From Bugula neritina (Eukaryota > Animalia > Bryozoa), in the NCBI GenBank assembly GCA_964035545.1, contig CAXIUT010000244.1:1-17265 (forward strand): 17,265 nt of DNA, given 5' to 3'. Numbering within the stretch: the first letter of the stretch is position 1; every line of letters begins with the position of its first letter. The position numbers and the translations under genes are program-made. Below are positions 2,753 through 15,917 of the stretch, one piece after another. The notes below the pieces were generated by a model. That model was not told the origin of the DNA, did no database searches, and saw only the letters and a list, made by a program, of their open reading frames with translations.

Positions 2753-4063
2753 ATGAAGGGACGCACTCTCCCTCCCCCACACTCCAGACACCTCAAACCT
2801 CCCCCATAAAGACAATCCCACCATACATCTCTCGATCTCACCCCTCAAAAATAACAAAAATCATCAAATACACACCATAAAACACAAGCTAGATACCCTA
2901 ATAGACCTTCAGGCAAATCGTTTCCCAAATCAGTTTCAGTAATGGGCACAAAATAATCAAATAATAAACATGGTCGTCGAGCCTTTACACCAACAGCTGC
3001 TAGAAATTACAACCGAAATGTAGAATATAATTAACTACTAAACGATTCAACTAGACATTAATTGAATAGAAATGATCGATACCATACAGGACATCTATTT
3101 TAGATATAAAACAATCCATAAAATAGATTATCACTTAGCAATTTTCAATAATATACCAAATTAGGTAAAATTTTAGTCAAAAATAATAATAATTAAACCA
3201 AAGGATTAGAACTCATGGGAATACAGTGTACTTTGATGTCTAATAGTAACAGTCAAAAAATAAAATATAAAAATAATAAACCCATTGACTAGTCTTAAGA
3301 CTGGTATATCACACAACAAGCAGCAACTCTTGATATTAAAAAATCTATTAATAAATCTAGAACTAAAAAATATCACTATAAAAAAAATAATAATCAAAAA
3401 GAACAAAAATAACAAAAAAGTTACAGCCAATTCTTATAAAACAACAACAAAAACAATAGTAGATAAATAAAGAAGAATAATAGTAGATAAATAAAGAAGA
3501 ATAATAGTAGATAAATAAAGAAGAATTCATATTCGTCAGTTTTGGTAAAACAACGACGCCAATTATCAATAAGATAGCAAGCAAAGGTAAACATAATAAA
3601 CATTCAATAATAGCCAATAAAGCAATAGTAGATACCAAAAGAATCATACAGACAATTATATGTAAGATTGATGAAATATCAAGATTAGACCCAATTGGTT
3701 TCATAAAATTCAAAACATTCATTGAAATCTAATCAAAAATAAATACCAAAAGAATTATTTGATTAACTACTAAAATTTAAAAAATAAAAAAAAATAACTT
3801 AATAAAATTAAAAAGCTAAATAAAGTAGCAAAGTTGATAATCAATTATTAACTAATTGTCAATAATAAAAATTATTGCAAAGAAAATCCATTAATAAACA
3901 ATATACTTTCAAAAAAAATAATGATATCAATAAAAATAAAATCATCAGTAATAATAAAAAACTTATGATCAGTAAAAGAACTTCATTCGGTGATGATTTC
4001 CATGTAGAAGGATGGAACTAAAGTCAATAGTTTTAAAAAAGATAACCCATCATGATAGTATGA
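2753..4063 (+). CDS. Hypothetical low-complexity N/K/E-rich protein, ~436 aa
   Basis: Open from ATG 2753 (MKGRTLPPPHSRHLKPPP) to TGA 4061-4063 under TAR=Glu; contains a 3x NSREIKKN repeat. Confidence 0.72.
3455..3526 (+). repeat. 3 x 24-nt in-frame tandem repeat (NSREIKKN)
   Basis: AATAGTAGATAAATAAAGAAGAAT three times in tandem. Confidence 0.93.
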
Positions 4064-4096
4064 ATCCATTTATATTTGCCCTTTTATTAATAATAT

Positions 4097-4170
4097 TGAT
4101 ATTTAGATAGTTAATTAGTGATATTTAGATATTTAATTAGTGATATTTAGATATTTAATTAGTGATATTT
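4097..4170. repeat. ~3.3 x 22-nt intergenic tandem repeat
   Basis: TGATATTTAGATA(G/T)TTAATTAG at 4097, 4119 and 4141, partial copy at 4163. Confidence 0.9.
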
Positions 4171-4265
4171 ATCTTTAATCATAGTGATTTATATTTTTAA
4201 TTATAGTTGATATATATTTATAATAACTATCAGAAAAATAGATGATGCTGAAGAACCTAAATGTA

Positions 4266-5018
4266 ATGTCTTTTATGTTTTCAGTATTAAAATATAATTT
4301 ATCTAAAAATTACTACCAAATTCTAGGTCTTTCTTAGAAAGCAGATGCCAGTCAAATCAAACAAGCCTTCAGAAAATATGCAAAAATATACCATCCAGAT
4401 ACAAATAAAGGCAAATAAGAACAATTCAAATAAATAAACGAAGCCTACCAAGTCCTTTCGACCTAATAAATAAAAAAATAATACGACAGTGCTCGTAAAG
4501 ATCCAAAACCAAATCCAACAAATGAACCTTTTTCAGGCTCATATTCTAAATATAACTATAACAGTCGACAGAACTAACGATAGTATACTCAATAAGACAT
4601 CCGTGAAAACATAAGAAGACAACAAGAATAGATGACGAGAAGACAACAAGAATAGATGATGAGAAGACAACAAGAATAGATGATGAGAAGACAACAAAGA
4701 GCAAATTATGATGATTTAGGACAAAGTTACAACAACTATGAACGATATGCTCAGTAGACTTTCAGAAAAAAACAAAAAACTAAACCTTATCAACATACTC
4801 AAAAATAAAAAGTAACACTCGATTCGGTAAAAAGACAAGAGTAAATGCAAGAAAGGTCATCACAAAGAAGATAAAAAGAAGAGAGATAAAAGAGGCAAGA
4901 ATAAATAAAAAAGACAATAAATTAGAAATATAATCGAGCTGTTTCTAATACAATAAATATGGTTTAAGGGGTAAGAAAAGTTGGAGAATTTGTTAAAAAT
5001 ATTTTCAAAAAGAAATGA
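4266..5018 (+). CDS. J-domain (DnaJ type C) co-chaperone, 250 aa
   Basis: NYYQILGL...IKQAFRKYAKIYHPD...FK(E)INEAYQVLS...(E)YD is a canonical J domain with the HPD motif, followed by a charged C-terminal region; ends TGA 5016-5018. Confidence 0.93.
4614..4697 (+). repeat. 3.5 x 24-nt in-frame tandem repeat (RRQQEEM[T/M])
   Basis: AGAAGACAACAAGAATAGATGA(C/T)G repeated inside the J-protein CDS. Confidence 0.9.
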
Positions 5019-5233
5019 TTCCTTAGAGTATTGCTCTTATCAGTAAAGTATATTATATAAGAACTTCAATATCAATTTTAGCTATTTTAGTAATTAATTA
5101 GTCTCCATACAAAAAGGATATCTATTAAGTTTACTTTCGAATAGATATTTTATACCTTAATACGATGACATAATCGATAAGACAATTGGATGATATATTG
5201 ATAGTTGTAGAATAATATCGGATTGATGTTAAA

Positions 5234-7530
5234 TCAAGATGAGACAGGATGGATCTATGCAAACTTACTGCCGAAAACCAAACTGATAATGGCCATCAAT
5301 TTCATAAGAATGTTCAAAGAAGGACCTGAAGTATCTTTCAATGGATCTCCTACTGTATCTCCTACAACTGCTGCCTTATAAGCATCAGAACCCTTTACAT
5401 GCATCTTGCCCTTCTTATCCTTTATTCCGTACTGTTTGATATACTTCTTTGCATTATCCCAAGCACCTCCAGTATTTGCTGCTGAAGTAGCAAGCATCAC
5501 TCCCGAAACAATAGCTCCAGGTATAAATCCAGCAACCATCAAAGGACCAAAAATAAATCCTAAAAGCAAAGGACTCAAAATAACCTAAATAAATAATAAA
5601 GTACCAAAAGACCAGGAATAATCATTTCTATTAGTGAAGCTCTAGTTGATATTTTAATACAAGAATCATAGTCAGGTTCGACTTATCCGGATAATATACC
5701 TGGGTTTCTTTAAACTTGATCTCTAACTTCATCGACCATTCCTTGAGCAGCCAAACCAACAGATTTGATAGTAAAAGCTGAAAACAGATAAGGCAACATA
5801 GCTCCAAGTAAAAGTCCTGTAAAGATCTAAGGTTGAGTAAGTGAGATCAGTGTACTGAATTCTAAGCCAGCATTATGAAGGAATCCACCATATAAAGCCA
5901 AAGAAACCAAAGCAGCTGAACCAATAGCAAATCCTTTACCAATAGCAGCTGTAGTATTACCAGCAGCATCCAAAGCATCAGTTCTTTCTCTTACATCATC
6001 TCCTATCTCAATCATCTCAGCAATACCTCCAGCATTATCAGAAATAGGACCATAGCCATCAATAGCTAATGTTAGAGGTAAATTAGCCAACATTCCCAAA
6101 GCTGCCAGTGCTACTCCATAAAATCCAAGCCATTTATTAGAGAAATAGGCTGTAAGAGCAATCAAAATAGCAGGGATTACAGTAGATAGATAGCCCAAAG
6201 CAAGACCCAAAGTAACATTAGCACCAGCTCCTGAAAGACAAGAATATGATAGCTCTTGAACAGGTCCATAGGAATGTGAAGTCATGTACTAGGTGAAGAT
6301 AGCGATGATGAGTCCTGATGCCATTCCAATTAGCGAGCATAAGAACGGATGAAGAGGAGTCCTACCTGAAATTGTTTTTTGTGAGAATCTCAGTTCGAAA
6401 TTAGATGGGTAAGTCAGAATAGCTGCTACATAGATGAGTCCTGCCATGATGATAACTGATAGAATCAGTTGTATTTTAAGTGTTGTTTCGATTTTACCTT
6501 ACTCATCAACGGTCATACAACTAATAGCAATGATACTGACCAAGAGACAGATCACAATACCAAATGCTATTAACATGAGCGGGTAGAAGAAATTACTAAG
6601 ATAGAAATCGCATCCACCACTACCAACCAATGAGTTACCTGAAATGACGAGAGCAGCACAAGTAGATTAGGCAAAAGAACCGAATAAATCAGCACTCATA
6701 CCTGCTACATCTCCTACATTGTCTCCTACGTTATCAGCAATAGTAGCAGGATTTCTAGGACTATCTTCAGGAAGACCCATCTCAATTTTACCGACCATAT
6801 CAGCTCCAACATCAGCAGCTTTAGTATAAATTCCTCCTCCTACTCGACCGAACAAAGCCACAAATGAACCTCCCAATCCATAACCAGCAACCGATTAGAA
6901 TAGCTGATGATAATGGTTAGAATCACTACTTGAATCAAATTTATCCATCATTCTTTTGTATACCACAATTAGTACTGTTAAAATCAATAGGCCAATTGAG
7001 ACCAATGCGAAACCCATGGTGCAACCAGCTCTGAAAGCCAACCTAAAGGCTTCAGCTAGTCCATCTTTAGCACAATAAGTTACTCTGTAGTTGGTCCTTG
7101 TTGCCACCACCATGCCGATAGCTCCACAAAGCATTGAAACCAAAGCTCCAATCAGAAAAGCAACAGCTGTCCAAAATTTGAATTAAGTCAAGAAGGCAAT
7201 GATGAAAAACATCAAAAGAACGAAGATTAGACAGATGCCATACTCCATAATAAGGAAGGATTTGGCTCCACTAGAAATTTTATCACCAAGACTGATCAAC
7301 TATTGACGCTTTCCATGACTCAGGGCATTAATAGAAGAATATCCTTAATATCCCTGTCCAGATTGGACGTCAATTTTTTCAACAGCTTGATAATTGATGA
7401 TAGCCCAGATGATGCCGATCAAACAGCAGACTACGATGATGACAATTTCGATGGGATAACTGAGAGGTCCATTACAGTCCGAGCTGGTAACAGCCTGGAA
7501 GTGCTAAAACCTGTCGTTAATTCTCCACAT
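5234..7530 (-). CDS. VP1: Membrane-bound H+-translocating pyrophosphatase (V-PPase), K+-dependent type, ~758 aa, one 20-nt intron
   Basis: Hallmarks [94 protein letters not shown] (Ala, not Lys) marks the K+-dependent class. The four track ORFs join through TAA/TAG and intron 5585-5604; 2277 nt coding; TGA at 5234-5236. Confidence 0.97.
5585..5604 (-). other. 20-nt spliceosomal intron in V-PPase gene
   Basis: GTACTTTATTATTTATTTAG; removal restores [17 protein letters not shown], collinear with the family consensus. Confidence 0.92.
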
Positions 7531-8295
7531 TTATGAATTATACGAAAGATTAAGAGTTGAACCTATATATACTGAAGATATTGAACATCTATATTAACAT
7601 CTTTTAAATCATATCAGCTCTATTTTAAGTCGATTATAGCATCATTCAATAGTCAAAACAGAAAAAGAACATTGACAGAAGAAATCAATAAAATACAATA
7701 AAAAATATTGCAGATTAGTTTCTCATCATTTGCAAATAATCTTCATTAAATTTTCATTTATTTTTGCTTATTTAAGTTATATTCAACTTAAAGTTACTTT
7801 TTTGTTTTTTAATATCCTCTTTCATTGAATAACAGTTCAGAATTATCAGTTATAAAGAAGAAGATCTTAAAAACTACTTCCTTTTCAATCCAGCTAGTAG
7901 CCTATCATTTCACATAAAGATAGTTCTCATAAAATAAAGAACATTTAGATAGTTTATTCTCAAGATTCAACTAAAAGTGCTAAAAAAATTGACATAAACT
8001 ATCGACTAAGTAGAATAAAAAAGTTACAAATATCATATAAAACTCTCCCAACTTGAAGTTTTTCTTCAATATCGAAGGTAAATATCTGTTTTTCTTCTTA
8101 ATTTATAGTCCTCATCTTAAAAACTAACAATAAATGATGTTGACCTCAATTTCAGTTCATCTGATAAGCATCTAAAAACCCATCCAAAGAAAGCACACGA
8201 CTCATCTGATCATCTCCTATCATTTCCAATTGCAATAGTGGTCATAATTGAAGTGATCAAAGTGATTTATTCTTCGATATTAAAAAATAGAACTA

Positions 8296-9102
<807 letters not shown>

Positions 9103-9630
9103 GACTTTGATCAATCTCAATCTCATATTTATCACTTTTTTACATTTTGAAGGATTAAAAGGTCAAATTAAATGACTTTAATCAAGTTTGTAGTTTAGAA
9201 TTTAAACCTCAAAGAACTTTACCTTTGAAGACAAATTTATCATTTTTTAGTATCTAATTGATTCTTAAGCATCAGTAACTACATGACTACTAATGACACT
9301 TTCAAAAGAGTTGTTTTAGCTTGATTTTTTAGGATTTCCTTATTTTTATAAAGAGCTATTTTTCCCAGGTACTTCGCCTTCACCCTTGTATAAAAACAAA
9401 AATAAATGTTGTAAAACTACCTGAAAATCAAAAAAGGTAATTAGTCCTTCATAGTAAACTCAATTTTTCTTAAAAAGGATAACTCTGTTCAATAAGAAAA
9501 GGAAAAAATAAAAAAGATAAAGACGAAATATAGAGTCTCTTTAGAGGAGAAAAAGTTGTTTATTTTGTTAGGAATGGAGGAGATATGCAGATAAAATGTG
9601 TGTAGGTTAATAAAAATATTCAAAAAAGGT

Positions 9631-11915
9631 ATGTATAGTACAATAGAAGGTTTCTAGTTCAAGAAAGCTAGCTGGATATCGAGGCCTCGCAAGGCTGGAC
9701 ATCCAGAAAAGCGCTGGGGACATACTTGTGTTAGTCACGAAGGCAAACTTCTCCTCTTTGGAGGAATGTTTGAGGGCAACTAAGGTCTTCACTGCCTTGA
9801 CTGTGACTCTTTAGAAAACAGATTAATTAGTTTCATCTCTGCTCCTGAAAGAAGGTAAAGTCACTCATGCACTCTCTATCATGATTCTCTCATCATTTTT
9901 GGAGGTTGTATCAACAAAAAAGTACTATTTTTCTTCTACCCTTTGGGTAGATTTCTTTTTCAAATAAACCTTTATTTAGGTCACAAGCTAGCTACTTCAA
10001 CTTAATATGAACTCTAATCCTCCAAACTGGATAAAACTATAGCAAAAAAAATGAAATTTCTCCGAGATAAAGTCATGTAGCTGCTCTTATTCAAGATCAA
10101 TATATTTTGATTTATGGCGGAATAAGTTTGGACTAAACAAGTCTTGATTAATTTTGGCTTCTAGACCTCTAAACTGTAACTTGGCTCCCTATTTCTGACA
10201 TCCAAGGCAAATTTTAGGCTCAAACAGGTATTACTATGACTCCAATCGGTTAAAGTATCTACTCTTTCGGAGGATAATGGGGAGACGACAAAGATGGTCA
10301 TTATTCTAACGATTTGCACAAATTAAATTTCCAAGGAGAGATAGATAACTAGAATATACCTTCTCTTCACATTGAGAAGCTTTAAACTTTAGGGAAGAAG
10401 CCTAAACCTCGAACTGGTCATGCTTGTGTTGAATACAAAGAAAAAGCTTCTTTTAATACTAGGTGGCTAGGGTTTTTCATCAAAAGGTACTACTATCTTG
10501 TTCAATGATATCTGGATACTTGATATTAGAACTTTTACTTGGTTCTAGCTACAAGTGTAAAATAAATCTGTTTTTAAACCTCGTTCAAATTTTACAGCTA
10601 ATCTCTTTAAAGGCACTTTATATGTTTTTGGTGGCTTAACTCATCTTGAAACTTTTAATTCTACTAACTAGCTTATCACTTTAACTCTTTCTTAAACTCG
10701 CCAATCTTTAAGATAAGAACAATAAAACAGAAATTCTTTTTTAGTTCCTATAAAAAAACAAAAAAACTACTGTAGCACTTGCATGCTAGAATTTATGCCT
10801 TTTGAAAAAGAAGTACTGCCTATGGTACCAAAAATAAAGCATAATAACAGCCATTTTATATCATCTATTCATAATATTCTTTATGCTTCCAAATTTATTT
10901 CATCTCCTTTTGAAGCCTTAGCTTTGGTAATTGACTCTCTTTCAAGATTAACTCCTCATCACCACAAAAATATCTCTTTAAATTTGGTTGTCAATTGTAC
11001 TAATATCAGCTCCTAGCTAGCTCTTTTAGTTTAAAAAAGTTATCTTGTCTTGAATGTATAAGGTACAAATCTGACAAAAGACCATTTAGAAATGCTTGTT
11101 TATGACTATCAATTGAAAGCTTAAATGCCAGCTTTTGACTTTAAAAATGGTCTTTTCAGACTTGGAAAATAAATTCTTATCACTCAACTCTTTGAAGATA
11201 ACATCCTTCAATGTTACTTGCTCTCAGCTAACTATCTTCGTTCATACAATCTTCACTTCTAGTCTCTTTAATAAGATCTGAAACAGCAATAAAATAAATT
11301 TTTACTCCAATTTTTAGAATAAAATGCAATTTCCTTTACTAATATCGAACCTTTGAACTTGAACATCTATATTGGAGAACTCTGTCGTTTGAGAAATGGT
11401 GATTTGTAATTAAAACAAGAAAATAGTACAATTCTATCTCGAATCTAAAATTAATAGCGTTCATTTAATTCATTTATTAAAGACTACTTTCTAGATGAAC
11501 GTTCTGTCTCTCTAAACATCGCCAACTAATAAGTTCCAATAATTCCCTATGAGGTACATCAATATCTATCTAGTAATTCTTTAAATAACATGGTACACAA
11601 CGTGAACAGTAATCTACATCTCCCTTCTTCTCTAAAGTTCACTTACTCATCAACTCAAAAACTGATAACATTCTTTCATCCATTAAGATATATGCCAACA
11701 ATCGAAGAGTAGCTGTTTTAAAGAAATCTCCCTAGATATCAGGGTTTATTGTGCTGAGTGATCTTTCTCCTTTGAACTATCCTCAAACTCGATGTGAGAG
11801 TCATCAGGTAAGACTAGCTTTGGAAGAAGAAATCAAAATATTAATTGAAGAAGATAAGAAAAGGATAAATGAAGTAACAGTGCAAGAACTCTAACAAGAA
11901 ATCAACGATTAATGA
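9631..11915 (+). CDS. Kelch-repeat beta-propeller fused to a degenerate MORC-like GHKL/S5 region; two frame breaks in this sequence
   Basis: Six Kelch-like blades (RWGHT..LLLFGG, RESHS..IIFGG, RESHV..LIYGG, IYSFGG, PRTGHA..LILGG, PRSNFTA..LYVFGG). The C-terminal half follows MORC motif order: PFEALALVIDS, FKNGLFRLG, YLLSANYL, IYIGEL..GDLEL, IYANNRRV, GFIVLSDLSP. Introns 9922-9979 and 11554-11573; +1 shifts needed at ~10052 and ~10441. Start uncertain (in-frame ATGs at 9406, 9574, 9631). Kelch call is strong, MORC call moderate. Confidence 0.8.
9922..9979 (+). other. 58-nt intron in Kelch gene
   Basis: GTACTATTT...TTTATTTAG, T-rich; removal links FGGCINKK to VTSELLQLNMNSNPPNW, completing the blade. 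Confidence 0.65.
11554..11573 (+). other. 20-nt intron in Kelch-MORC gene
   Basis: GTACATCAATATCTATCTAG; removal moves into the frame carrying IKIYANNRRV and running to TGA 11913-11915. Confidence 0.8.
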
Positions 11916-11987
11916 TTTGTAACGTCAATAATTGTAACACTATTTTAACCATCCAATTAAATACACTTACTATAACAGTAAATATCT

Positions 11988-12635
11988 ATGAAGACCATTA
12001 TTTGCATAGTATTCAGTCTTATTCTCTTGCAAACCATAGCTATACCCCTATCTCAAGAAGATTCATCATTACCTGAATAACATATATCTAACAAACTTGT
12101 CTCTTTCTTCAACAAAATCTTTGATAGATCCCAAACAACTCTATCAAACGATTCATGTACTCAGAGCTGTTGCGCTTCTCTAAAGTCTCGATCTCCTATG
12201 ACCTATCACTACTACCAAAATACAGGTCGTTTCAAAGGAGGATCAGGATAGTATGCTATCAATGTTCATGGATACTCAGGCCAAGGTTCAGGTTATAACA
12301 ATCCTGATAAACAGTGTGTCCAGAATACAGGTCCTCTTCCCGCATCGACATACAAAGTTTCATACTGTGTCAACACTATGCACTCACCTCCAGTTCAAAG
12401 GCCATGTGCATTTTACTTATAGCCTCAGAGGAAAAGCGAGATGTGTGGTCGAGATGCCTTTTTTATTCATGGATGTGCCTGTTGTACTCCTGGAGATGAT
12501 ACAAACCCTCCAACTGCTGGATGTTCTGCTGGATGCATTGTATTAAGTTATGCGAATAGAAAGAAGATTAGAGTAGGAGATACCGTCATTGTAGAACACT
12601 ATGAGCCAAAGGAAGAATATCTATTACAAGAATGA
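11988..12635 (+). CDS. Secreted Tlde1/DUF2778-like L,D-transpeptidase (YkuD-fold) protein, 215 aa
   Basis: Signal-peptide-like N-terminus MKTIICIVFSLILLQTIA. Then YYQNTG..GYSGQGSGYNNPDKQCVQNTGPLPASTY...LEP...GRDAFFIHG...SAGCIV...R, matching the motif string I recall for bacterial DUF2778/Tlde1 proteins, with His and Cys catalytic candidates. Intronless, three in-frame TAR codons, TGA stop. Confidence 0.85.
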
Positions 12636-12792
12636 TTTCATTTAGATAAATTTAGAATAAATATGATAGTTATTCAAAGTTTTCTTGATCAAGAAAGTAT
12701 ATTCTATTTTAGATTGAAATATTATCATGATTTAGACCAGAAATAACATTCTTAATGATATATGAAGAAGTAAATTAATAACATACAGTTGA

Positions 12793-14090
12793 TCATTAAA
12801 TCTATAGTAACTAGATGGTATCTTTTAGCAAGTCATCATCAAAATTCTAATTAATTTATAGCAACATTTGTAGATACATATCCTTGAGATGTGAAAACTG
12901 TGCCAATGAAATAAAGCCATGAAATTGGTAGTCATTGTGCTCAACTATTTTTTAGTTTTAGGTTCTGATAAAGAAAAGAATCAAATTAGGATTCCAATTC
13001 GATACTTTACACTGGCAAGGTGGACCTATTCTTCTAGCCTATTATCGAAAAATATTTATTTATGGTACCCAGTTATGAATGTCAGGTGTATTAGGTTTTT
13101 AATACTCAACGTATTTTAGTAACTGCCTTACGAAGATATTTTCTAATTACCATTCTTCATCTTTTAATTAAATATTTATATTATTTTTATCTTAGCGGTC
13201 ACACAATAAATTAACATAGAGGTTTTTGTGTTGAAAAATAAAGTTCTTCTATTTTCTATATTTTATAAAGTAACAGTTGGGAAAATATTATTATGCCTTC
13301 TATATTCTTAACTATCTTTATTATTTGTCATTATCTACTTTATTTATCGAGTTTCTAGTAGCGATCTGACTAAGTTTTATCTTTGATTCATTGTCTAGAT
13401 TAATAAAAGTCATCTTTATTTGACCAGGTGGACTATTATACATTTTATTTGCTTAGAACCATCCAATCTTTGAATAGTTATTCAGCTTGAATAATTTTTT
13501 ATTGCTATATTCTGGCTAACTACCTAGTATCTATTAATCTTTCTATGATTGCCAATAAATAAAAGGTTTTCCATTTAAGTAAAATCTCTAAGACGATAAT
13601 AAGCTATCTTTACTATTTTCTATTTTTAACTAAATGTGTAAAAGCAAGTCAGTTGAGTCTCATTAAAGAAAGCAGTTTTTGATTTTTTGAATTATTCAAC
13701 TGAAAAAGGAGGAGGAAGAATTTAAATTTCTTCATAAGTTTCCAGATTGACAATCACAATTTTATTTGGATATTTTAGAAGGAGTATTCTATCTGTCAAC
13801 ATTTATCCTTAAACATAAACTTCTCCGCAATCTTTTGACCAGCATTTCACTCCATTAAATTTGAGATGATGAACTTAGAAGGCTTATTTTAAAGCGTATG
13901 AATAATCAATCCTCACATATGTATTATTAAATGCTGGAGAAACTAATCTGGTGTGTTGTCTCATTAGAATTTTTGATCTTGCCAGTTGAGATACAAACAT
14001 AAAATAATATTTATTGTGGATAAAGTTTCTGCTCCTTCTTAAAATAAGAGGACATTTCTATAAGAAGCTAAATACTTGATGAAAGTACAT
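12793..14090 (-). CDS. Hypothetical protein, ~420 aa, with one unresolved intron or frameshift near 13460-13640
   Basis: Two long overlapping open frames under TAR=Glu (about 14171-13483 and 13659-12793). ATG at 14090; an upstream in-frame ATG at 14195 is separated by a TGA. No recognisable domain. Confidence 0.6.
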
Positions 14091-14266
14091 TTTTTATCCA
14101 TTTTTATAAGAATCTTATGGTTTTTTGTTTGCTTAAATATGTTCAATAATAACCTTCTAATCAATAAATATTCATTGAATAAAATAAGGATTCATACTGA
14201 TCAATATAAAGGTTCAATATATTGAATAACTTATCATTAAATATCAATAAAATTATAACTAAAGCA

Positions 14267-15917
14267 TCAATCACTCTCTGCTGACTGCGGTTTCTTTTAT
14301 GGTCCCTTCAAAACACTCATAATTCCCATCTTTGCTTTGATAGAAGTTAGCAACAACTCAGCTGCCTACTGTTGGGCCTCTTCATTTTTACCCATCCTTG
14401 CTAACTCTTCTTTTTGCTTCAATTTTTATCCCAGCTTTTTTGTCTAGAGGTTCAAAAGATGAAACTTTTACCTTGAAGAATTCTACTATGAGTTTAAAAT
14501 ATCTTCTATTCTTTTTCTTCTGACTCCTTCGTAAAGTCTTAGCTTCTATTATGGGCTCTTGATAGTTGTAGTGTAGGTTGACTAGTTCCAGCTCTTCCTT
14601 ATTTTTCTTCTGCCTCTTTCTCTGTTATTGCTTCTTTTGATGACTTTCAGACCTTCTCATTCTCTTAGCTATTTCCATATAATTTTATCCCAGCTTTTAG
14701 AGTCAATGCTCAAGCGTTGATTTTTTCTTTCCTCATTAGCATACCTTTGAAGTATTTCTTGTTTCTTTTAGTCGTCTATTCTTGGCTTATGCTTTGACAT
14801 GACTTCCTTTTCGAACAGTTCTAGCCTTCTCTGCATTTCTTCATTTTTATTTTTTCTACCTTCTAACTGCCTTTTCAACAAAATCGCTTCTTCTTCAAGA
14901 AGTCTATTCATTCTTTAAGATCTTCCAGGTGCCTGATACATATTCTGTTGTTAAGGTTACTATTTATTTTACGAACTAATCTGATTTTTCTCTTTCCTTA
15001 TCCTTTACATCTATTCAGCTCTCTATCTACACTTCTTTTAATGCTCGCGAACTGATTAGATATCATACCTTTGATGAAACTACCTTAATTTCTTCAACTT
15101 TATCTTCTTCTACTATAAAGATGGTAGCATTATCTCAGACTGATACCTTTGCTACATCTTTTGATAAAGCCATTCCCCTGTTTTTACTGATTAGAACTTC
15201 TTTTGTAAATCTTTTTATATTTGAATCATCTTTTCTCGTTATTGTTTTCTCTTTTTCATGCTTTATTCAATCTATTTCCTTTTCAATTCTCTTTGTTTTT
15301 CTATTGACAACTGCTTCATTTCTTCTTATCTTTCTTCTTGCTCTTTTTTCTTTTTTAACTATTAGAGATTTGTCTCCTCTTGTCTCTTCCTCATCTCGTT
15401 CCAGTCGCAAATTATGTCTTTAACTTTTTGTTAATGTTATTCCTTTGTAAAAATCTCTTTCATTTCCACTACTAAACCTTTTCCTTTATCCTATCCTCGA
15501 ATTTGTCCATTCAAATATTCTTTTTTTTTGTTGATTTCTTCTCTTTTATGTTTGATTTCTTGTTCTTTATCTCATCATATGTCATTTTTGGCACTGCTTT
15601 TGTCGGTTCTGGAAGAGGAAGTGGCTCCTATCTCAATTAAAAATTACATTCGCGACATTAACTAGCCCATATTTAAGTTCTCTTTCAAGCTACGTAAAGG
15701 TCTCTCCAATTACACGACCAGCAACTAGATCAGATGGTGTATTGGGTTCCAACGCGATCAAATATCGATGAATATTTTCTCTGTCAAGAGCAGCTACCAT
15801 CTATTTTTATCGAGCCAAACGCACCTACTAAGACTATGCCTCATTAGCAGCTTTAAGATTACGATTTGAGCCTTTTTTGGCTGCTCCACGCTCTGAAGGT
15901 TATTTTTTTGATGACAT
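14267..15917 (-). CDS. Long E/K/R-rich coiled-coil protein with a 20-nt intron and about three frame breaks
   Basis: ATG 15917 (MSSKKEPSERGAAKK), intron 15628-15647, long charged helical segments, C-terminus LLTSIKAKMGIMSVLKGPEKKPQSAESD then TGA 14267-14269. Frame changes needed near 15570-15510, 14700 and 14660-14360. Confidence 0.7.
15628..15647 (-). other. 20-nt intron in coiled-coil gene
   Basis: GTAATTTTTAATTGAGATAG; contains an in-frame TGA; removal gives NVAN-EPLPLPEP. Confidence 0.8.

Follow-up and report, generated by a model that had tools for sequence, protein, structure and literature searches.

A ciliate gene for a predicted secreted Tlde1/DUF2778-type protein on a telomere-capped contig of the Bugula neritina assembly

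The window considered here, that is, the whole stretch of DNA analyzed, is the entire 17,265-nucleotide contig CAXIUT010000244.1 (our contig C253) of the assembly GCA_964035545.1, deposited under the bryozoan Bugula neritina. The contig carries C4A2 repeats at its start and G4T2 repeats at its end. Positions 11988-12635 of the forward strand, to which all the coordinates given below refer unless stated otherwise, hold the complete coding sequence of a small Tlde1-type protein, predicted to be secreted, which is recognized by its reading frame, by its match to the Pfam family PF10908, and by a profile of eukaryote-type relatives. The gene consists of a single ATG-to-TGA frame of 215 sense codons plus the TGA stop, without an intron, and no open frame is found on the strand opposite 11988-12635. 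Three in-frame UAR codons (UAA or UAG) are read through as sense. The first is a TAA at codon 31 (12078-12080), in a variable linker, the second is a TAG at codon 88 (12249-12251), between GGSG and YAIN, where the column of the homologues is mostly glutamate (E23 A13 Q5), and the third is a TAG at codon 145 (12420-12422), between FYL and PQ, where the homologues have D30 E8 T7, and never glutamine. The C-terminal LLQE that precedes the TGA coincides with the ends of two homologous proteins, P0065 and P0069, which indicates that the TGA is the stop of this gene.

The reading of the UAR codons is indicated by a second gene of the contig, encoding an H+-translocating pyrophosphatase (H+-PPase), at 5578-7608 of the reverse strand, which scores up to 180 bits against the Pfam family H_PPase and contains 13 in-frame UAR codons. 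One of these codons, in HQLF(TAA)SVAGYGLGG, aligns with Glu225 in the segment GLFE225AITGYGLGG of the Vigna radiata enzyme 4a01, and another, in IIAIFT(TAG), aligns with Glu423 in the segment GFVTE423YYTSNAYSPVQ of the same enzyme. Given these two alignments, it can be deduced that the genome reads both UAA and UAG as glutamate, as in the peritrich-type code (table 30), and it is this usage at the conserved glutamate positions of the H+-PPase that accounts for the TAA at codon 31. A third codon, in DLFGSFA(TAA)STCAAL, lies at chain position 301 of 4a01, which we take to be the conserved gate glutamate. The alternative of UAR read as glutamine (table 6) was considered, and is ruled out by the codons at E225 and E423 of the plant enzyme, together with the lack of any homologue with glutamine at codon 145.

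The Tlde1-like gene is present in a single copy in the 216-Mb, 321-contig assembly, in which a six-frame search with PF10908 returns a single match (69.6 bits, at 12264-12560) and the profile of eukaryote-type relatives scores 306 bits at a single place. The segment 11400-13400 is found almost entirely in contigs of independent runs from three studies, and the Logan contigs from three studies contain 27-99% of its sampled words. The G4T2 telomere repeat that closes the contig (17170-17265) lies approximately 4.5 kb downstream of the gene. As read from the DNA, the frame is best explained as a probably functional nuclear gene, intronless and present only once, in a ciliate with UAA and UAG as glutamate codons. 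An origin as a contaminant or a bacterial gene was also considered, and is ruled out by the use of UAR as sense, by the telomeres, and by the synteny described below. The initial annotation of this DNA, made from its letters alone, had described an intact frame of 215 codons with TAA and TAG as sense codons, had proposed translation with table 30, and had placed the gene in the nuclear genome of a ciliate; the frame, the UAR codons at the glutamate positions of the H+-PPase, and the combination of sense UAR codons, a telomere-capped contig, and syntenic neighbors in the relatives agree with these proposals.

The assignment of the protein to a family was based on four stop-free pieces of the frame, which were searched separately against Pfam. 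The 56-residue piece at 12252-12419 matches PF10908 (Tlde1_dom) with 42.7 bits (E 9e-11, profile positions 3-52 of 120), and the piece at 12423-12632 matches it with 27.6 bits (E 4e-6, profile positions 68-101). The protein belongs to the Tlde1/DUF2778 family, well past what chance would produce, given that the score of the former piece exceeds the Pfam gathering cut-off of 30.1, and the family named in the initial annotation is thus the correct one. A match to the YkuD profile, which the same annotation had suggested seeking, was not obtained, with no hit to PF03734 on these pieces at E-values of up to 10. In comparison with the classical YkuD motif, HXX14-17[S/T]HGCh, the sequence reads H-x18-SAGC-I, in which the spacing fits and the histidine of SHGC is replaced by alanine, and the likeness to the classical YkuD L,D-transpeptidases (Ldt) is found only at the level of the fold.

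The context of the gene, in turn, is eukaryotic, with eukaryotic neighbors, a telomere downstream, a signal-like N-terminus in the protein itself, and no Tldi (DUF2195) gene in the surroundings, and for this reason the gene is placed in the domain family, rather than in a type VI secretion system (T6SS). The short spacing between the histidine and the cysteine, given in a 2020 preprint as a trait of DUF2778 in relation to YkuD, is not found here either, this being a descriptive trait, and not a Pfam criterion. The protein does present the complete set of traits of a ciliate family of putatively secreted Tlde1-like proteins, as this family is defined here, that is, the signal-like N-terminus, the CxxxCC..L..R motif, the insert HGCxCC...PP..GCSAGC, and 11 non-catalytic cysteines. 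A phmmer search with the 56-residue piece over 1.84 billion (1.84e9) representatives recovered 51 proteins, of which the best relative is P0001 (191 residues), which is 80% identical over residues 52-208. A scan of genome contigs with the same piece (12252-12419) also returned a 14-residue match in a gammaproteobacterial metagenome-assembled genome (L002), which is taken as spurious.

The N-terminus of the protein, MKTIICIVFSLILLQTIA, is strongly hydrophobic, with Kyte-Doolittle means of 2.1-3.1 over 11 residues, and a similar hydrophobic start is found in almost all the full-length members of the family. Residues 1-19, MKTIICIVFSLILLQTIAI (11988-12044), would represent a signal peptide, to judge from this hydrophobicity, with cleavage probably occurring after TIA. 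This segment is followed by a variable stretch (approximately residues 20-53), and then by a eukaryote-specific N-terminal extension (residues 54-70; 12147-12197), formed by an N-x-S sequon, here N-D-S at N54, and the motif C57-x3-C61-C62...L..R, with the homology to Tlde1 beginning at approximately residue 72. The N-x-S-C pattern is found in most members of the family, and C36, C40, C41, and R47 (in the numbering of P0001) are invariant in 29 eukaryote-type sequences, with the CxxxCC motif being absent from the bacterial-type sequences compared. The hydrophobic, signal-like N-terminus and all of the motifs cited in the initial annotation are present (YQNTG at residues 76-80, GYSG at 95-98, NNP at 104-106, GPLP at 115-118, CGR at 153-155, IHG at 160-162, and SAGC at 180-183), and the linker of some 50 residues described there is retained for its variable part only, since the sequon and the CxxxCC...L..R motif that follow are conserved.

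The catalytic domain, of the Tlde1/DUF2778 type, covers approximately residues 72-208 (12201-12611), and is predicted to have a YkuD-like fold, based on Pfam and on the model of P0001. The predicted catalytic residues are His161 (CAT, 12468-12470), in FFIHG, which corresponds to H140 of P0001, and Cys183 (TGC, 12534-12536), in SAGCIV, which corresponds to C162 of P0001 and lies in the [S/T]xGC motif of the L,D-transpeptidases. The conservation of this pair, another point of the initial annotation, is seen in the alignment columns of H161 and C183, which are at least 90% conserved when the eukaryote- and bacterial-type sequences are taken together (48 rows), and do not vary inside either set. 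The column of Arg155 (CGA, 12450-12452), in MCGR, six residues before the catalytic histidine, is also invariant, being represented by R134 of P0001 in the eukaryote-type set and by R78 in the bacterial-type set.

A eukaryote-specific, cysteine-rich insert is located between the two predicted catalytic residues (C163, C165, C166, and C179; CACCTPGDDTNPPTAGC, 12474-12524), and its cysteine columns are invariant among the eukaryote-type sequences. The distance from the histidine to the cysteine is 22 residues here, in comparison with 12 in the bacterial-type matches and 10 in the Tlde1a of Salmonella (H121 and C131). The 11 non-catalytic cysteines of the protein (57, 61, 62, 110, 127, 140, 153, 163, 165, 166, and 179) match family-invariant columns, and every one of the family-invariant residues is found in the protein of 11988-12635. 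A protein that passes through the secretory pathway and forms disulfide bonds is suggested by the combination of a signal-like N-terminus, a conserved sequon, and eleven additional cysteines.

The fold was examined on the 80%-identical P0001, using an alignment (A1) that includes pieces of the protein of 11988-12635. The model has a mean predicted local distance difference test score (pLDDT) of 92.5 and a predicted template modeling score (pTM) of 0.81, and the top matches retrieved with it by Foldseek from the PDB are exclusively L,D-transpeptidases, with an E-value of 1e-5. In VIA-align, the first match is Csd6 of H. pylori (Z 11.5), followed by the Tlde1a of Salmonella (7uo8, 7uma, and 7uo3), at Z 11.0-11.1, with a root-mean-square deviation of 3.1 over 119-121 residues (model 48-187 against chain 2-165), Pgp2 of C. 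jejuni (10.7), Bd1075 of Bdellovibrio (9.8), and the classical Ldt enzymes (approximately 9-10). In BFVD, the best match comes from a phage, and is labeled “Tlde1 domain-containing protein” (E 5e-10, template modeling score, or TM, of 0.85 by target). As modeled, then, the family has an L,D-transpeptidase (YkuD-like) beta-sandwich fold that resembles Tlde1a, which is the fold anticipated in the initial annotation. Given that the top structural matches are L,D-carboxypeptidases, the model suggests a carboxypeptidase-like, rather than a cross-linking geometry. These enzymes (Csd6, Pgp2, and Bd1075) are cell-shape L,D-carboxypeptidases of the YkuD fold, which differ from the ciliate protein in having only 10-18% identity with it and an extra NTF2-like domain, and in acting on the cell wall of the organism that produces them.

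The family extends well beyond this contig. The search with P0001 recovered 94 clusters at E <= 1e-5, of which 91 have a precomputed PF10908 label, and almost all are metagenomic. The named member is TTHERM_00486700 of Tetrahymena thermophila SB210 (XP_001032882.3, UniRef100_I7M6H6), which is recorded as a hypothetical or “Tlde1 domain-containing protein”, and orthologues from T. malaccensis and T. utriculariae are also found in the family, as are two proteins (P0129 and P0012) present in EukProt under transcriptome-style identifiers. The Tetrahymena proteins share the eukaryote-type architecture and the invariant residues, and fall in the same ciliate-family clade as the protein of 11988-12635, but belong to a lineage in which UAR encodes glutamine, and their signal peptide is not followed by the long linker. 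One representative, P0092, whose 90% cluster contains TTHERM_00486700, is 61% identical to P0001. The T. thermophila protein has thus already been labeled by domain in the databases, automatically, and the gene of 11988-12635 is an ordinary member of the family. No paper on a eukaryotic or ciliate Tlde1/DUF2778 protein, or on TTHERM_00486700, was found in the literature searched.

A further 76 loci were found in the metagenome contigs of JGI and ENA, which were read with X at the UAR codons and with TGA as the stop, and most of these loci have 1-8 in-frame UAR codons and a TGA stop. In some of them, the UAR codons fall on invariant glutamine columns, which is typical of a Tetrahymena-like code, and in others, on columns rich in glutamate or aspartate, as in the gene of 11988-12635. 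Repeats of C4A2/G4T2 end three of the metagenome contigs. A 235-kb contig from compost (ENA ERZ746982 NODE_2; L003, at 2784-15733, the same contig as L072) carries six tandem paralogues of 182-195 residues, all closed by TAA and none with an internal UAR, beside RPL23A, GATase, and HECT genes. The RPL23A of this contig is 89% identical to the MMETSP-transcript representative of a cluster that contains an entry of Platyophrya macrostoma (Colpodea), and the contig probably derives from a member of the Colpodea in which TAA is a stop codon. On these sequences, the family includes at least the Oligohymenophorea as well as a lineage that is colpodean-like, UAR is read in three different ways within it, and every eukaryotic member that could be identified is a ciliate. 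At the DNA level, the nearest relatives of the gene have a protein identity of only 64-80%, and a strongly different guanine-cytosine (GC) content, and saturation of the synonymous sites would be expected at such distances.

Very short introns are found in some members of the family, such as that of approximately 19 nucleotides in L073 (about 8376-8394), and also in L067, L077, and L082, and the odd C-terminus of P0002 is accounted for by the L073 intron having been read through. In L082, there are seemingly two copies with several introns. A longer member, P0106 (264 residues; from the ENA/JGI metagenomes), has an additional cysteine-rich N-terminal module of some 90 residues before the Tlde1 part, which may be a binding domain. 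Genes with a HECT domain lie within a few kb of a Tlde1-like gene in three unrelated contigs (L003, 12687-13184; L005, 12781-14321; L006, 296-499, and L007, 243-446).

Shared ancestry of the eukaryote-type proteins is indicated by both their sequences and their genomic surroundings. In the 29 eukaryote-type sequences, 46 columns are invariant, including the histidine, the cysteine, the arginine, and the 11 further cysteines. The consensus of the bacterial-type sequences is Y.Q.TG...GYSG.G.G.NNP...GP.P..Y...GR..F.IHGDN..H.AS.GC, to which the ciliate proteins add the hydrophobic N-terminus, the N-x-S sequon directly before CxxxCC..L..R, cysteines throughout the domain, and a cysteine-rich insert of 10-12 residues (HGCxCC..GD...PP..GCSAGC). 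An unrooted maximum-likelihood tree was built from 58 rows, 37 of them eukaryote-type and 21 bacterial-type, and in it a branch supported at 100/99 separates all of the eukaryote-type rows from the others, with a stem of 4.18 changes per column. The protein of 11988-12635 is located in a starred clade of seven rows, together with P0065, P0066, P0068, P0069, P0073, and P0079, and is 80% identical to P0066. In the same tree, Tetrahymena groups with the loci in which UAR encodes glutamine, and the compost copies form a clade of their own.

The gene directly upstream of the Tlde1-like gene, a Kelch/MORC-like gene at 9631-11915, is recognized by a weak Pfam beta-propeller match, and in tblastx comparisons its orthologue is collinear and directly upstream of a Tlde1-like gene in L017-L020, L018, L023, and L028. 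The gene that lies downstream is partly found again in L018, L023, and L049, and in L027, an orthologue of the H+-PPase (71% identical) lies some 4 kb upstream, on the opposite strand, which is the same arrangement as in the present contig. The Tlde1-like proteins of the contigs with conserved neighbors are only 64-75% identical to P0001. The shared insert and cysteine pattern, the single clade, the tiny introns, and the conserved gene order together show that an old acquisition has been inherited vertically.

PF10908 is distributed broadly in the alpha-, beta-, and gammaproteobacteria (2020 preprint), and Tlde1 domains also occur in phages and in Rhs toxins. The stand-alone or Rhs-fused bacterial and phage proteins compared here (P0022, P0005, P0025, and A0A6J5SGW0 of an uncultured Caudovirales phage) are 30-40% identical to the ciliate protein over the domain, and share with the ciliate family the motifs Y.Q.TG, GYSG.G.G.NNP, GP.P..Y, GR..F.IHG, and S.GC, but have neither a eukaryotic-type signal peptide nor the cysteine framework, have a short loop between the histidine and the cysteine, and lie across the 100/99 branch. 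The ciliate proteins also have SAGC in place of the SHGC of the bacterial-type matches. Given the wide occurrence of PF10908 in proteobacteria and its presence in phages, and the fact that all of the identified eukaryotic members are ciliates, a transfer from bacteria or phages to ciliates would be the parsimonious direction. The family would then descend from one ancient event, in which an L,D-peptidase of the Tlde1 type passed from bacteria or phages to the ciliates, followed by vertical inheritance and remodeling for the eukaryotic secretory pathway.

The domestication proposed in the initial annotation is therefore retained as regards the transfer, with a source in bacteria or phages as the parsimonious reading, and is abandoned as a lineage-specific or newly arisen event, given that the family is old and ciliate-wide. 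A broad, vertically inherited distribution in eukaryotes, which that annotation had considered to be fatal to its proposal, was indeed found, and counts against the recency of the transfer, rather than against the transfer itself. The identity of the gene and its evolutionary status can be considered to be near certain, and the gene represents a eukaryote-adapted branch of Tlde1, which is shared with other genomes and is of a kind that could be expected.

The function of the protein can be approached through its closest characterized counterpart. The Tlde1a of Salmonella is an L,D-carboxypeptidase that acts on tetrapeptide stems (mDAP3-D-Ala4, in which mDAP is meso-diaminopimelic acid), and also exchanges D-amino acids and performs weak 3-3 transpeptidation; its Cys131 and His121 are catalytic, and both are required for toxicity, while R115 forms a salt bridge with the carboxylate of the bound D-amino acid (PMC9638812; 2020 preprint). 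The ciliate family keeps the cysteine, the histidine, and an arginine six residues before the histidine, which is the spacing of R115 and H121, and the equal spacing alone identifies Arg155 as the putative counterpart of R115. Tlde1a (also Tae5, of S. Typhimurium; PDB 7UMA) is a small single-domain protein of the same Pfam family, and is matched by the fold of the model over its whole chain. The His/Cys pair and the arginine at -6 are conserved between the two in sequence. The ciliate protein differs in being eukaryotic, with a probable Sec-type signal peptide in place of delivery by the T6SS and no Tldi immunity gene in its context, and in having the CxxxCC module, the 11 additional conserved cysteines, and a distance between the histidine and the cysteine of 22, rather than 10 residues.

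Based on these features, the most probable function, to which we assign a probability of roughly 60%, is that of a secreted or food-vacuole L,D-carboxypeptidase/transpeptidase that would act on the peptide stems of bacterial peptidoglycan. The protein would have five parts, that is, a signal peptide, a variable linker, the sequon with CxxxCC, the Tlde1/DUF2778 domain, and the cysteine-rich insert between His161 and Cys183. In this scheme, Cys183, with the help of His161, would attack the L,D bond of the tetrapeptide stems (mDAP3-D-Ala4), while the carboxylate of the D-amino acid would be held by Arg155, and the acyl-enzyme would then be resolved either by water, as in an L,D-carboxypeptidase, or by a D-amino acid or a stem, in an exchange or transpeptidation. 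The enzyme would find its substrate in the food vacuoles or in the medium, in the form of intact or fragmented walls of bacteria that have been ingested or live in association with the ciliate. Ciliates have no peptidoglycan, which means that any such substrate would be foreign, and ordinary peptidases do not cut the L,D bond. The cutting of a bond that these peptidases leave intact may thus weaken the bacterial walls, or make them easier to digest, and the gain to the ciliate may be the killing of bacteria, the use of wall peptides as food, or the control of symbionts.

A number of points weigh against this interpretation. The loop between the catalytic residues carries the cysteine-rich insert of 10-12 residues, which could represent a change of specificity, and the fold is known from the model of an 80%-identical homologue, rather than from the protein of 11988-12635 itself. 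Sequence searches of the PDB (phmmer with both pieces, and hmmsearch with the family profile) reach no Tlde1a or Ldt, but only chance matches, and the family is therefore distant from the one characterized enzyme. The tree is unrooted and does not resolve the bacterial sister group, with the Rhs-fused domain of P0025 placed there at 83/57, and the ESM Atlas clusters nearest to P0001 are labeled Nucleocytoviricota. In the Logan contigs, none of the runs that contain 11400-13400 is recorded as RNA. The T6SS enzyme is toxic to growing cells, and the trimming of stems would have to aid the killing or digestion of bacteria within a food vacuole.

The first of these points leads to the alternative that has most in its favor, although it is itself unlikely, in which the fold and the nucleophile have been kept and the substrate is now a non-peptidoglycan component of the ciliate, such as cyst-wall, extrusome, or surface proteins, or free D-amino-acid peptides. 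Such a repurposing would be consistent with the ciliate-specific insert at the active-site loop and the N-terminal CxxxCC module, with the very long stem that leads to the eukaryote clade (the 4.18 changes per column given above), and with the six tandem copies in a colpodean-like, and hence probably cyst-forming, ciliate. The residues of the stem chemistry of Tlde1a (the arginine at -6, the histidine, and SxGC) are invariant, however, the best structural matches are L,D-carboxypeptidases of peptidoglycan, and bacterivory offers an obvious foreign substrate. To our knowledge, there is no ciliate polymer with L,D peptide bonds. That the family has become a eukaryotic L,D-transpeptidase or peptidase for the secreted material of the ciliate itself or for D-amino-acid peptides, and is no longer directed against peptidoglycan, seems a little less likely still. 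If this were the case, YkuD-type chemistry would for the first time be seen at work on an endogenous structure of a eukaryote, and the insert and the CxxxCC module would be adaptations to the new substrate.

A second alternative, which is doubtful, concerns the route of acquisition, rather than the function, and holds that the family was acquired from, or is shared with, the giant viruses (Nucleocytoviricota). It draws on the ESM Atlas clusters that come closest to P0001, whether judged on features (0.94) or on shape (TM 0.59/0.68), which are labeled Viruses, most commonly Nucleocytoviricota, but these Atlas taxa rest on few members, and contigs of AT-rich protists can presumably be mislabeled. 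No relative came up in IMG/VR, which was scanned both for the eukaryote-type motifs and with P0001, the nearest Atlas clusters of P0069, a close relative, are labeled phage and bacterial, the best matches in BFVD are phage Tlde1 proteins, and the contig itself has ciliate telomeres and host genes. Three such Tlde1-domain clusters are found in the Atlas, with proteins of 164-166 residues, 70-109 members, and the label “Viruses 100%”, and these could be either mislabeled protist contigs or a real giant-virus branch.

It is less likely still that the frame is a silent or decaying relic, a contaminant, or an artefact of the assembly. The lack of runs recorded as RNA among those that hold the gene and the odd internal telomere-type tract at 8355-8427 would be in keeping with this idea, and are outweighed by a frame that is intact over 215 codons with all of the family-invariant residues kept, three UAR sense codons that would be impossible in a bacterial gene, the recurrence of 11400-13400 in independent runs of three studies, the same gene order in other metagenomes, and the transcriptome-style EukProt identifiers of P0129 and P0012. 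That this ciliate, and no other, has recently domesticated a T6SS effector is scarcely credible, since the single, intronless copy and the weakly supported proximity of the Rhs-fused toxin domain P0025 in the tree are set against the orthologues known from three species of Tetrahymena, from a contig of colpodean type, and from 76 environmental loci, against a derived insert and cysteine pattern common to all of the eukaryote-type members, which form one clade, and against neighboring genes that are conserved across contigs whose Tlde1-like proteins have diverged to 64-75% identity to P0001.

If the enzyme is active on peptidoglycan, as favored here, the ciliates, which are major grazers of bacteria, would have a conserved L,D-peptidase for secretion that was drawn from the weapons of bacteria or phages, and no other eukaryotic family of YkuD/Tlde1-type enzymes would have had its architecture defined before. 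The outcome seen in the Dae amidases of animals would also have been reached a second time, from a different fold. Chou et al. (in 2015) reportedly described the Dae proteins as Tae amidases of the T6SS that were transferred to eukaryotes such as ticks, and the term itself, domesticated amidase effectors, occurs in PMC8906078. The likeness is one of analogy only, in that a peptidoglycan enzyme of bacterial warfare has been taken up by a eukaryote, has gained a signal peptide, and has been kept under selection. The Dae proteins have the papain-like NlpC/P60 amidase fold, rather than that of a YkuD-like L,D-peptidase, cut another bond, and are found in other hosts, and the ciliate protein is thus not one of them, although the route by which its Tlde1 branch was adapted is similar. 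The family would represent a case of the transfer between domains of life of a cell-wall enzyme into bacterivores, and the strong conservation, together with the expansion to six copies in one lineage, argues for a real role in feeding or defense. Given that T. thermophila has one orthologue (TTHERM_00486700), the function is testable in a model organism.

The remainder of the contig presents a number of further features. The contig-start repeats occupy positions 1-80, and an internal telomere-type tract, (GGGGTT)x12, is found at 8355-8427, so that the contig resembles a telomere-to-telomere unit of 8.4 kb joined to a unit of 8.8 kb with a right telomere only. The internal tract could be either an alternative site of telomere addition or a join made in the assembly. 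The two halves are also neighbors elsewhere, as in the metagenome relative L027, which has the H+-PPase and the Tlde1-like gene together. On the left half, with UAR read as sense, the frame at 4188-5015 has the look of a DnaJ-type protein (YYQILGLSQKADASQIKQA), and the frame at 388-1758 of the reverse strand has that of a transporter of the sugar/MFS type, with a weak Pfam match to Sugar_tr on one piece. Both of these frames appear to be ordinary ciliate genes.

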